Sequence record: OQ718158.1
Reading direction: 5' to 3' (one strand)
DNA: 64,000 nt
Positions 9,699 through 11,247 of this stretch are shown here, one piece after another. The position numbers and the translations under genes were made by a program. The notes below the pieces were generated by a model. It saw nothing but the letters and a program-made list of their open reading frames with translations. It was not told the DNA's origin and ran no database searches. Every line of letters starts with the position of its first letter. Positions within the stretch are counted from its first letter, which is position 1.

Positions 9699-9725
9699 AA
9701 AGGGAGCCTTAGCTCCCTTTTTTTA
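9699..9725. terminator. Bidirectional rho-independent terminator
   Basis: AAGGGAGC-CTTA-GCTCCCTT hairpin with A and T tracts between convergent genes. Confidence 0.8.
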
Positions 9726-10200
9726 TATCTATCATATTTAATTTGCCTTCCTTGATAAGCTTTCTGGCTTGCTTAACACGAGCAGCATTGTTTGCACCAG
9801 GGATAACACCTAACTCTTCCAGTATTGCATTCTGTTGTCCTGCTGGGAGCCTTTTAAACTTATTCGTATCGATTGTTAGTGCAGTGTGATGTATAACTTG
9901 CTCATCTTCAGGAATGCTGTTATTACGCTCCAGATAATCCGCAAGATTTCGTAGTACCTCGTATAAGGGTTTATCGGTTAAGTGCTTCATATAGCGATTA
10001 AAGCTGTTCTGTACTTTACCTTCCCATGCGTTCACTTCGTTCTGGAGAACTTCACGACAGTGTTGATTTTCGAAGTGATAGTGATCAAGTACTGGCTTAG
10101 TTATTGGTTCCTTAATTATAGGATCAATTCCTTTTTGCTTCTTTAGTAATTCATTTCGATAGTTTGCAGCTTCTTTACTATCTTTTAATCTTTTCTTCAT
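9709..10200 (-). CDS. Endonuclease VII (gp49)-like Holliday junction resolvase
   Basis: LDHYH...CREVLQNEVNAWEG resembles the Endo VII His-Me core; most Zn-binding cysteines are absent. Confidence 0.68.
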   Translation of the reverse strand: MKKRLKDSKEAANYRNELLKKQKGIDPIIKEPITKPVLDHYHFENQHCREVLQNEVNAWEGKVQNSFNRYMKHLTDKPLYEVLRNLADYLERNNSIPEDEQVIHHTALTIDTNKFKRLPAGQQNAILEELGVIPGANNAARVKQARKLIKEGKLNMIDIKKGS

Positions 10201-10294
10201 AAATCCCCACTAAACTAATTCTTATCAAAATATTTATGCGTTACTTCAATGTTCAAGAATTATGTACTTTTTATAAATTTTTTATCATAATAGT

Positions 10295-10322
10295 GAGACA
10301 CTTTTGAATTTGGTGCTATAAT
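10295..10322 (+). promoter_or_regulatory. GAGACA-N16-TATAAT promoter driving a non-coding region
   Basis: GAGACA 10295-10300, TG-C-TATAAT 10317-10322; no credible + strand ORF downstream. Confidence 0.75.
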
Positions 10323-10328
10323 GTTAAT

Positions 10329-10781
10329 TGTAGTGATGACAATCCTGTTGAATGCAGAAATGCATATAAATTAGAACCTGATCCTATCGAAAATGTAGAT
10401 GGCAGATGAGCAGTTCAACAGTGCGATGAGCAGAAGAAACCCGTTAGATGTGGGCATAGTTTGAACCCCTCACGGCGACACGGCTCAATAAAGAACTCCG
10501 ATAAGCATACAGAGAGTTCCTCGATAGATGTATAAGGATCGCACCTTACCAGATTTGCTAAGGGAGTTTATTAAGTGATTTAATAAACAGCCTGAAGTTT
10601 GATTGTATAGACTTTCAGGTGAGTGTCAGGATGATTAAGACTGACGACCGTTGCACATGACTGCGATAGAGAGAAACAGAGCAACCCGCTTTCGTTCTTA
10701 ATGAATTTTAAGAAATTCGCAATACAATAAATGCTGAAACCATCAGCGTCAAGAATTAAGAGACTTAATTGTCTCTTTTTT
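10329..10781 (+). ncRNA. Candidate large structured ncRNA (~450 nt), family unknown
   Basis: Bounded by a promoter and a terminator, GC-richer than its flanks, with more than 10 complementary stems found by eye (see findings). Confidence 0.7.
10758..10781 (+). terminator. Rho-independent terminator ending the candidate ncRNA
   Basis: AAGAGAC-TTAATT-GTCTCTT followed by a T run. Confidence 0.75.
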
Positions 10782-11037
10782 ATTGTCTTCATTCCCCTGC
10801 GGGGGGATGAAAATGTCTTCAACAAATCCCGTCAAGTATTAAATCTTTTAAAGTTCTTTATAATTAATTATAAGAAATGAATATGAGTTACGTAGTAACG
10901 AATATTCTTCAGCTAACGAATGAAATGAGTTAGATGAGTTCACTATAAAATAATTAATTCCTTTCATAATTCAATTCAATCAATTCTGTAGTTTAAAACC
11001 AAAAAAAACCAGCAACAATGTGCTGGCTCCTTGTGAG

Positions 11038-11247
11038 TTAGTGCTTCTCGTTTTGTTTTTTAATTTTCTTATTAAAAGACTTAACTAATAAGTCTCTATC
11101 AATTAGTGGCATATTAAGTAGTGTTCCGTAATCAACACTTTCCATATAAACAGAACACTCCATTAATGCAGTTTTAATATCTGACTTATTCAACTCAAAT
11201 TCCTTAAGTACTTCTTGTATTTCTTCAGGAGATGAGTGGAGAAGCAT
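11038..11247 (-). CDS. Small baseplate hub assembly protein (gp51-like)
   Basis: Coupled to the gp26-like gene; LLNMPLIDRDLLV pattern. Confidence 0.45.
   Translation of the reverse strand: MLLHSSPEEIQEVLKEFELNKSDIKTALMECSVYMESVDYGTLLNMPLIDRDLLVKSFNKKIKKQNEKH

Follow-up and report, generated by a model that had tools for sequence, protein, structure and literature searches.

The 64,000-nucleotide (nt) stretch of DNA from sequence record OQ718158.1 that was analysed here (the window; position 1 is its first letter) comes from an Asteriusvirus (121Q/PBECO4-type) jumbo coliphage, and between 10295 and 10781 it carries what is very probably a gene for a functional, structured RNA that belongs to a new family and matches no known one. 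A first-pass annotation, made by a model from the letters of the window, had proposed a large structured non-coding RNA (ncRNA) of phage at this place, possibly of a new class, and this proposal is borne out by at least 42 covarying homologues, a promoter of its own, the lack of a conserved open reading frame (ORF), and the lack of any match in Rfam. The family has members of about 0.5 kb (~450-520 nt) with at least 15 covarying helices, and is carried by one clade of virulent jumbo phages in four to five copies per genome. Conserved RNA folds of such size and intricacy are rare, and past examples have been ribozymes, ribonucleoprotein cores and, recently, RNA cages.

Covariation Among Homologues

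Full-length copies were reduced to 42 sequences below 95% identity and aligned with MAFFT, and helices were defined as stacks of covarying alignment columns, using shuffles and 3′ partners slid by 1-3 columns as controls. The structure model obtained in this way comprises 15 helices, several of them mutually crossing, and 89 pairs. Pairing is found in 95.0% of 3467 cells, compared to 75.7% after shuffling and 38.5-45.6% in the slid controls, and 71 of the 89 pairs are compensatory, having changed on both sides (47.5 in shuffles), while the covariation score amounts to 0.491 against 0.06-0.10 in the slid controls. None of 500 shuffles reached the observed values. Such a covariation test of homologues had been among the checks proposed by the first-pass annotation, and the window copy belongs to the family by the compensatory changes seen in P1, P1b, P2, P5, P8-P13, and PK1-PK3. 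Its score against CM R1, a covariance model of the knotted 3′ core, is 118.9 bits (E = 2e-20), the window copy being itself among the model-building sequences. Moreover, the fold of the single sequence is better than that of its shuffles (z = -2.56; 1 of 100 shuffles equally good), and the GC content is 40% in the core compared to 23-24% in the flanks.

The strand of the folded RNA can be read from the same alignment, as G·U exceeds A·C (261 vs. 55), which indicates the + strand. The only ORFs overlapping 10295-10781 are one of 81 aa on the - strand and one of 49 aa on the + strand; the longest ORFs in the 42 homologues differ in strand, frame, and length (41-106 aa), and none is conserved among them, in agreement with the earlier remark that no credible ORF is present. 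A TGRRAC/TGnTATAAT promoter, no conserved ORF, and a strand signal are found together at this locus, the transcript itself being predicted.

Much of the fold that had been drawn by eye from the window copy recurs in this comparison. The stems CTGTTGAA/TTCAACAG, GAGC/GCTC, GAACTC/GAGTTC, CCTGAA/TTCAGG, GTCAG/CTGAC, GTTGC/GCAAC, and TTCTTAA/TTAAGAA all show compensatory changes, and at the position of the TGCA-GAAA-TGCA hairpin, here termed P1a, 39 of the 42 copies form a hairpin of variable length when folded alone (GAAA loop in 11). The stem CCGT/ACGG is 100% paired and never varies, and thus provides evidence neither way. GCTGA/TCAGC does not keep its register across the copies (27% paired). 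Two further stems and the proposed pseudoknot have to be given up: GTGCGAT/ATCGCAC is paired in only 44.7% of the cells, and CCTTA (10544)/TAAGG (10559) in 50.5%, CCTTA pairing instead with TAAGG at 10533 upstream. The pseudoknot CTATCGA/TCGATAG shows no greater covariation than shuffles, and the actual pseudoknots differ from it. Tested together with others, GTGCGAT/ATCGCAC, CCTTA/TAAGG (10559), and this pseudoknot are paired in 56.9% of cells, compared to 56.8% after shuffling. The stem GTTTATTA/TAATAAAC is specific to the window copy, and a different insert takes its place in the others.

Helices and Pseudoknots

The coordinates of the helices, together with the pairing of each in the 42 sequences, are given in Table 1. 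The crossing set PK1, PK2, PK3, and P10 is paired in 97.6-100% of cells throughout and carries compensatory changes in each of its members. In the junctions between the helices lie invariant, mostly purine-rich strings, namely GAUGAG, GAAACCCGU, CACGGC, GAUAGA, AAGGGAG, GACCGU, GAAAC, and ACCCGC; GACCGU, GAUAG, GAAAC, and ACCCGC are the invariant strings of the knotted 3′ core. Around this invariant core, the peripheral hairpins P1a, the P2 insert, P7, and P13 have been swapped or expanded. A hairpin module of ~35 nt with the conserved loop UUUGUACAAUAUAG is located at P7 and/or P13 in most copies (alignment columns ~360-435 and 560-600); the window copy lacks it and has a plain AU hairpin in its place.

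The MAFFT alignments contain register slips in the variable hairpins, due to which P1a and P6 could not be scored on alignment columns and were instead folded sequence by sequence. P6 is formed by 41 of the 42 copies folded alone, with the compensatory variants UAGG/CCUA, UAUGG/CCAUA, and UUGAGU/ACUCAA. The inner hairpin of P2 (10452-54/10466-68 in the window copy) is unscorable for the same reason, and shows compensatory changes by eye. Downstream of P6, AAGGGA is invariant in 42/42 copies and the final G of AAGGGAG is at least 90% conserved, and no pairing partner for AAGGGAG was found within the RNA. The TTCCU of P5 was considered as such a partner and rejected, since the TTCCU side varies while AAGGGAG stays fixed.

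Table 1. Positions of the RNA element, its helices and signals, and the surrounding features; positions are those of the window except for the 121Q copies, which are given on the 121Q genome. The last column gives the percentage paired and the pairs changed on both sides, or the pair counts, in the 42 sequences.
Feature	Position	Strand	Description	Pairing and changes
Promoter	10294..10322	+	-35-region TGAGAC (family consensus TGRRAC); extended -10 TGCTATAAT at 10314-10322	
5′ domain	10345..10421	+	P1 = 10345-52/10414-21, enclosing variable hairpin P1a and P1b	P1: 93.1%; 7/8 pairs
P1a	10353-64	+	variable hairpin; GAAA loop in window copy	
P1b	10378-80, 10383-84, 10386-88 with 10398-10405	+	conserved 9-nt loop GAAAAUGUA (10389-97)	89.8%; 7/8 pairs
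PK1 (helix 3)	10410..10424	+	GCA (10410-12)/UGC (10422-24), across P1 3′ strand; pseudoknot with P1	100%; middle pair UA:24, AU:12, CG:6
P2 (helix 4)	10427..10487	+	10427-31/10483-87; encloses invariant AGAAACCCGUUAG, variable hairpin, CACGGCRAYRCGGC	100%; 4/5 pairs
PK3 (helix 5)	10478..10531	+	ACA (10478-80, within P2)/UGU (10529-31, in GAUAGAUGUAUAAGG); long-range pseudoknot	97.6%; pair 234/296 GC:26, AU:14
P5 hairpin (helix 6)	10493..10519	+	GAACUC (10493-98)/GAGUUC (10514-19)	95.6%; 6/6 pairs
P6 hairpin and AAGGGAG	10533..10566	+	UAAGG (10533-37)/CCUUA (10544-48); Shine-Dalgarno-like AAGGGAG 10560-66	
P8 (helix 7)	10590..10620	+	long hairpin 10590-10600/10610-10620; apical loop AUUGUAU (10602-08)	93.3%; 12/12 pairs
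PK2 (helix 8)	10602..10728	+	all seven P8 loop bases 10602-08/AUACAAU (10722-28); 7-bp loop-to-strand pseudoknot	99.3%; 7/7 pairs (e.g., CG:20, UA:20)
P9 hairpin (helix 9)	10624..10646	+	UGUCAG (10624-29)/CUGACG (10641-46)	95.3%; pair 475/494 UA:22, GC:7, AU:6, CG:6
Knotted 3′ core	10650..10721	+	P10 10650-54/10681-85 crosses P11 10662-66/10717-21 and P12 10669-73/10689-93	helices 10, 11, 12: 100%, 99.5%, 100%; 3/5, 5/5, 4/5 pairs
P13 hairpin	10695-701/10708-14	+	within knotted 3′ core	helix 13: 96.8%
Motif 1	10742..10751	+	AUCAGCGUCA; nearly invariant across 42 copies	
Intrinsic terminator (helix 14)	10758..10781	+	hairpin 10760-64/10771-75 (extendable; scan 10758-10777) and U-run	90.7%; 4/5 pairs (letters in ~20/42 sequences)
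3′ box	10788..10835	+	P15 hairpin UUCAUUCCCC-UGCG-GGGGGAUGAA (10788-97/10802-11), then CUUCAACAA, motif 2 AUCCCGUCA (10826-34)	
Trailer	10843..11044	+	AT-rich, 23% GC; hairpins 10887-91/10895-99 and 10913-17/10929-33 (loop GAAUGAAAUGA)	
Bidirectional terminator	11003-11044	both	between RNA unit and convergent 69-aa gene	
TGNTATAAT sites	5607, 10314, 32231, 34269, 37458, 37534, 42707, 47152, 47560, 53983, 59681, 63615	+	exact match	
Endonuclease VII gene	9709-10200	-	left border of 840-bp gap	
69-aa gene	11038-11247	-	right border of gap; precedes baseplate-hub gene	
121Q copy D	90.3 kb	+	downstream of sigma-factor gene	
121Q copy C	192.8 kb	+		
121Q copy B	247.5 kb	+		
121Q copy A	326.6 kb	+	counterpart of window copy	

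Promoter, Terminators, and 3′ Region

The promoter had been read as GAGACA-N16-TATAAT, and a consensus scan recovers it at 10295-10322 with 10 of 12 matches plus a TG extension, placing the predicted transcription start at ~10329. TGnTATAAT is present in 39 of the 42 family copies (three of these as TGCTATACT), and a TGRRAC-type motif is mostly found upstream. Exact TGNTATAAT sites occur 12 times in the window, all on the + strand, whereas 5.7 would be expected on both strands, which suggests that the TGNTATAAT-type extended -10 may be a phage-wide promoter class read by the host polymerase; this class would be an early one. Antisense promoters at TTGACG sites were considered and rejected, their -10 positions lying in covarying or poor sequence and being unconserved.

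A scan likewise finds the intrinsic terminator that had been noted by eye, as a hairpin at 10758-10777 followed by a T-run, and six terminator-like sites were counted over 2 kb where 0.6 would be expected. This terminator is shared by only about half of the family, with none in the 121Q copies C and D. Sequence conservation extends 3′ of it to ~10835, and the boundaries 10295-10781 proposed earlier are right as to the promoter and the terminator, both of which are real, but too short for the conserved unit. The unit probably continues to the bidirectional terminator at 11003-11044, the AT-rich trailer being probably the read-through portion of the same RNA unit. The trailer loop GAAUGAAAUGA (window 10913-33) recurs in copies of Munch and of metagenomes, and other copies have related downstream trailer hairpins with compensatory changes. 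In other genera the trailer has a hairpin with loop AACGAAGUGA and, 3′ of it, CGAAAAUUCUUGAC, another hairpin that covaries, and GGCAAAU. At the opposite end, the promoter of C-type copies is separated from the RNA body by a GC-rich hairpin with a U-run that resembles a terminator or attenuator.

The 3′ box is kept in 42/42 copies, including those without a preceding terminator, and the window copy has both the G-run hairpin (10788-10811) and the two AUCNNCGUCA motifs (10742-51 and 10826-34) that characterise the family. In P15 (helix 15) the G-run 3′ arm is invariant and the 5′ arm changes only between C and U, so that G-C becomes G·U. In the copies of Klebsiella phage K64-1, both AUCNNCGUCA motifs are altered identically to ACGNNCUUCA (window-equivalent positions 10744, 10748, 10828, and 10831), and this concerted change suggests that the two motifs have one shared partner; no C-to-A partner column that would compensate for the altered CGUCA of K64-1 could be detected in other parts of the RNA. 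The 3′ box does not code for a peptide, as 1-nt indels between copies break the reading frame, and a candidate peptide from GGGGGGAUGAAAAUG was rejected on the same ground.

Copies and Distribution

The segment 10201-11040 (840 bp) is 100% identical in the Escherichia phages EC.P1, BF17, vB_Ec-M-J, and WPEC3, and compared to 121Q and PBECO4 the identity is ~93% over the entire 840 bp and 96-97% across the RNA itself. This segment fills the gap that separates the endonuclease VII gene from a 69-aa gene, and given that both are on the - strand, rightward transcription in the gap should be a stand-alone unit of its own. In a blastn search against phage genomes, 72 records matched, each at 4-5 separate places. 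Four copies were located in the whole genome of 121Q, each of them on the + strand and intergenic according to the annotation, except that a 156-nt coding sequence (CDS), gene 516, has been called within copy B. Where they can be aligned, copies B, C, and D share ~70-82% identity with the window copy, and within the window neither blastn nor the covariance model found a further copy.

Related copies are found in Mimasvirus, Eneladusvirus, Alcyoneusvirus, and metagenomic jumbo-phage contigs, and when B, C, and D are used as queries, other genera are seen to hold copies at recurring positions, near 30, 174, 259, and 335 kb. Synteny across genera has been shown for copy A, which adjoins the endonuclease VII gene in G17, UE-S1, 121Q, CBB, Yen9-04, and Hallingskeid, and in part for copy D, as a sigma-factor gene precedes one copy in both 121Q (D) and K64-1. 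A specific degenerate motif of the family matches 45 metagenome loci, several of them on contigs 349-371 kb in length that match up to four times, and it has no match in 185,579 bacterial and archaeal genomes; a motif scan of IMG/VR returned only 121Q itself and one additional contig. As far as sampled, the family appears to be confined to Rak2-like jumbo phages, and four to five diverged paralogues are kept in every Rak2-like genome examined.

Comparison with Known RNAs

Rfam 15 comprises 4227 covariance models, which we take to include transfer-messenger RNA (tmRNA), RNase P, group I/II introns, ROOL, GOLLD, OLE, HEARO, raiA, 6S, riboswitches, and small ribozymes. A cmscan of the whole window against these models, another check that the first-pass annotation had proposed, gave no match at gathering scores. 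At E ≤ 10 over 10100-11100 there are ten weak matches to unrelated small RNA, microRNA, and long non-coding RNA (lncRNA) models, far below threshold and mostly on terminators, and those to Arrc14 and CyaR-like models at 11003-11044 are artefacts of the terminator. ARAGORN found no tRNA or tmRNA in the window. The earlier statement that the hallmarks of tmRNA, RNase P, and group I/II introns are missing is in line with both searches. A group I intron in particular was rejected, with no Intron_gpI-type match in Rfam, an intergenic position behind a promoter of its own, and no support for the pseudoknot CTATCGA/TCGATAG. No earlier description of this RNA family was found in the literature searched.

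ROOL and GOLLD, which are associated with phages or prophages and contain multiple pseudoknots, are nearest in kind. Like them, the new RNA is several hundred nt long, non-coding, and rich in covarying helices, and forms free-standing units, yet it matches no Rfam model in sequence or structure, and unlike them it is found only in virulent Rak2-like jumbo phages, as four to five paralogues per genome, and not beside tRNA genes. Both belong to the large ornate bacterial and phage-associated RNAs investigated by cryo-electron microscopy (cryo-EM) (bioRxiv 10.1101/2024.12.08.627333). RNase P RNA and group I introns likewise have invariant junctions set between covarying helices, pseudoknots of long range, an often GNRA-capped hairpin at the periphery, and lineage-specific insertions at fixed sites. 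The family differs from them in that there is no model match, the order of helices is another, and neither exons nor splice sites are present.

Large ncRNAs have also been described in PA5oct, a jumbo phage related to 121Q, RaK2, and GAP32, where RNA-seq defined four putative lncRNAs of 236-619 nt on the + strand, two of which make up ~5% of the phage reads at some time points (PMC7318152). This abundance indicates that phages of the wider group do express abundant large ncRNAs. No homology of the PA5oct lncRNAs to the new family was detected by nhmmer or by CM R1, and the four have no similarity to one another. The 3′ end of PA5oct ncRNA004 contains a P15-like hairpin with a pyrimidine arm and a G-run, UUCCUUCCC-AAAC-GGGGAGGAA, which is not significant by nhmmer (E = 0.69).

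Possible Mode of Action

Dense tertiary constraint and an invariant core with a variable periphery make this RNA resemble ribozymes and RNAs at the core of ribonucleoproteins, and the fact that copy A forms a unit of its own speaks for a trans-acting product. On balance, we lean slightly toward a trans-acting ribonucleoprotein or ribozyme over an element that acts in cis. The host-type promoter TGRRAC-N15/16-TGnTATAAT should give rise to a + strand transcript from ~10329, the first ~430 nt of which fold into a compact core of ~15 helices, including PK1-PK3 and the P10/P11/P12 knot. In the scheme preferred here, host polymerase would transcribe several loci at once and early, and the RNA would accumulate as a stable species that works in trans through its three-dimensional fold. 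As a ribonucleoprotein, it could bind a protein encoded by phage or host, or else contact the ribosome by way of the invariant Shine-Dalgarno-like AAGGGAG. The two AUCNNCGUCA motifs would serve as recognition or processing sites for one partner, and would set the 3′ end in copies without a terminator. Alternatively, the knotted core may be a catalytic centre acting on the two AUCNNCGUCA sites or on a host RNA, or the four to five paralogues may form a hetero-oligomeric particle early in infection, with or without protein. To see in this RNA a new natural ribozyme or a self-assembling RNA machine is a tentative idea and rather unlikely to be right, and any single specific biochemical activity is, at best, no more probable than that.

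Several observations weigh against this preference for a trans-acting RNA. No partner protein is consistently encoded beside the copies, and no catalytic motif was recognised in the RNA. Its start, ends, and abundance are all predicted, for every member of the family, and the covariation controls fall short of a full phylogenetic null such as that of R-scape. Furthermore, the 3′ box is conserved past the terminator, the 121Q copies C and D are without any terminator, and in the C-type copies a terminator-like hairpin separates the promoter from the RNA body; a cis-acting leader, or an element acting as DNA or R-loop, accounts for these three features at least as well as a simple stand-alone gene does.

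Two explanations of that kind have to be weighed. In a processive antitermination leader, the nascent fold, with or without Nus or phage factors, would stay on the polymerase and let it read through terminators, both the one just downstream and those in the long arrays of small + strand genes. Each copy does stand directly behind its own promoter, and about half have a terminator right after the fold with conserved sequence past it, an arrangement that recalls HK022 put, the Bacillus EAR element, and the boxA-boxB of rrn and lambda, which likewise lie directly behind a promoter and before a terminator; the 3′ box, a hairpin followed by a pyrimidine-rich CUC...AACAA, loosely recalls the boxB-boxA order of rrn, but the part matching the boxA core varies among copies and the resemblance is weak. 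The 121Q copies B, C, and D (C and D terminator-less) and all non-A copies from other genera precede co-directional genes, although such neighbours are expected anyway with most 121Q genes on the + strand. Copy A, however, is closed off within 250 nt by a bidirectional terminator and genes that converge on it, with no downstream operon and nothing to antiterminate into, and this layout is the same in 121Q, G17, UE-S1, CBB, Hallingskeid, and Munch. Known antiterminator RNAs are ~70-130 nt long with simple stems, compared to a core of 430 nt with several pseudoknots here; the new RNA, which has no homology to them, is 5-7 times larger. We regard antitermination as unlikely. A transcript that marks replication origins, as do those of T4 oriF/oriG or ColE1 RNA II, is a little less probable still; here the copies would mark several origins, and an early RNA would form a persistent R-loop near the G-run and AT-rich trailer and be processed to prime the leading strand. 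ColE1 RNA II is a structured RNA of ~550 nt that uses a G-run/C-run contact, and the new RNA has in common with these transcripts a promoter, a non-coding nature, a length of ~0.5 kb, a 3′ G-run followed by AT-rich DNA (in this case an invariant G6 run on the RNA strand and then the trailer with 23% GC), and dispersed copies in a T4-related genome. The four to five copies are co-oriented and spread over the 350-kb genome at positions that recur across genera, each with a host-type promoter, and the phage has genes for T4-type replication and recombination proteins, for RNase H, and for a UvsW-like helicase. Yet selection for RNA pairing throughout, with crossing helices and G·U-tolerant arms, maintains a tertiary structure far beyond the needs of any known primer, and T4 origins, to our knowledge, need only a promoter and an unwinding element. 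Cumulative GC skew is uninformative on this point, as it tracks gene orientation without an inflection at the copies, and no iterons or initiator-binding repeats were noticed. Should either of these two readings be true, the element would explain how early transcription is organised or replication initiated in 350-kb T4-related genomes.

The remaining explanations are far less probable. A riboswitch-like attenuator, sensing a metabolite, protein, or tRNA and setting termination at 10758-10781 against read-through, would account for a structured RNA directly before an intrinsic terminator in the window copy and for the extra 5′ terminator-like hairpin of the C-type copies. We consider it very unlikely, given that half of the copies have no terminator, that no alternative anti-terminator pairing overlaps the terminator, that copy A has no downstream gene to regulate, and that size and number of pseudoknots exceed those of known riboswitches, with no Rfam match. 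It is highly improbable that strong divergence hides the membership of this RNA in a known large family, for instance RNase P RNA, tmRNA, group I/II intron remnants, ROOL, GOLLD, OLE, or HEARO: size, the GNRA-capped peripheral hairpin, pseudoknots, and a phage setting are broadly alike, but the 4227 Rfam models gave only chance-level matches and ARAGORN no tmRNA, and the helix order matches, as far as we know, neither the group I P3/P7 nor the RNase P P4 topology. The least probable case is that no RNA gene exists at all and the locus is a dispersed DNA repeat, a set of small protein genes as annotated, or a chance fold. Several GenBank records do annotate one to four tiny 'hypothetical protein' CDSs here, UE-S1 annotates a repeat_region, and the window has the 81-aa ORF on the - strand; however, the 42 copies share no ORF of the same strand, frame, or length, conserved blocks are separated by 1-nt indels, and compensatory changes in 71 of 89 pairs together with a roughly fivefold excess of G·U over A·C are a signature of selection on a + strand RNA rather than on DNA or protein.

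Annotation and Material for Further Study

Tiny CDSs are annotated atop several copies, including gene 516 of 121Q, gp305-308 and gp575-578 of K64-1, and the 72-nt g347 and g348 of Yen9-04. Since no ORF is conserved across the copies, these are probably mis-annotations, and dozens of GenBank records with small hypothetical proteins at these loci probably call for correction. Isolates carrying the RNA are numerous (121Q, PBECO4, phAPEC6, G17, and others), laboratory E. coli is among the hosts, and at its length the RNA is amenable to in vitro transcription, chemical probing, and cryo-EM. Elsewhere in 121Q, a region of ~2 kb without an annotated gene (135194-137161) is flanked on either side by an array of very small genes, and may contain further non-coding elements.

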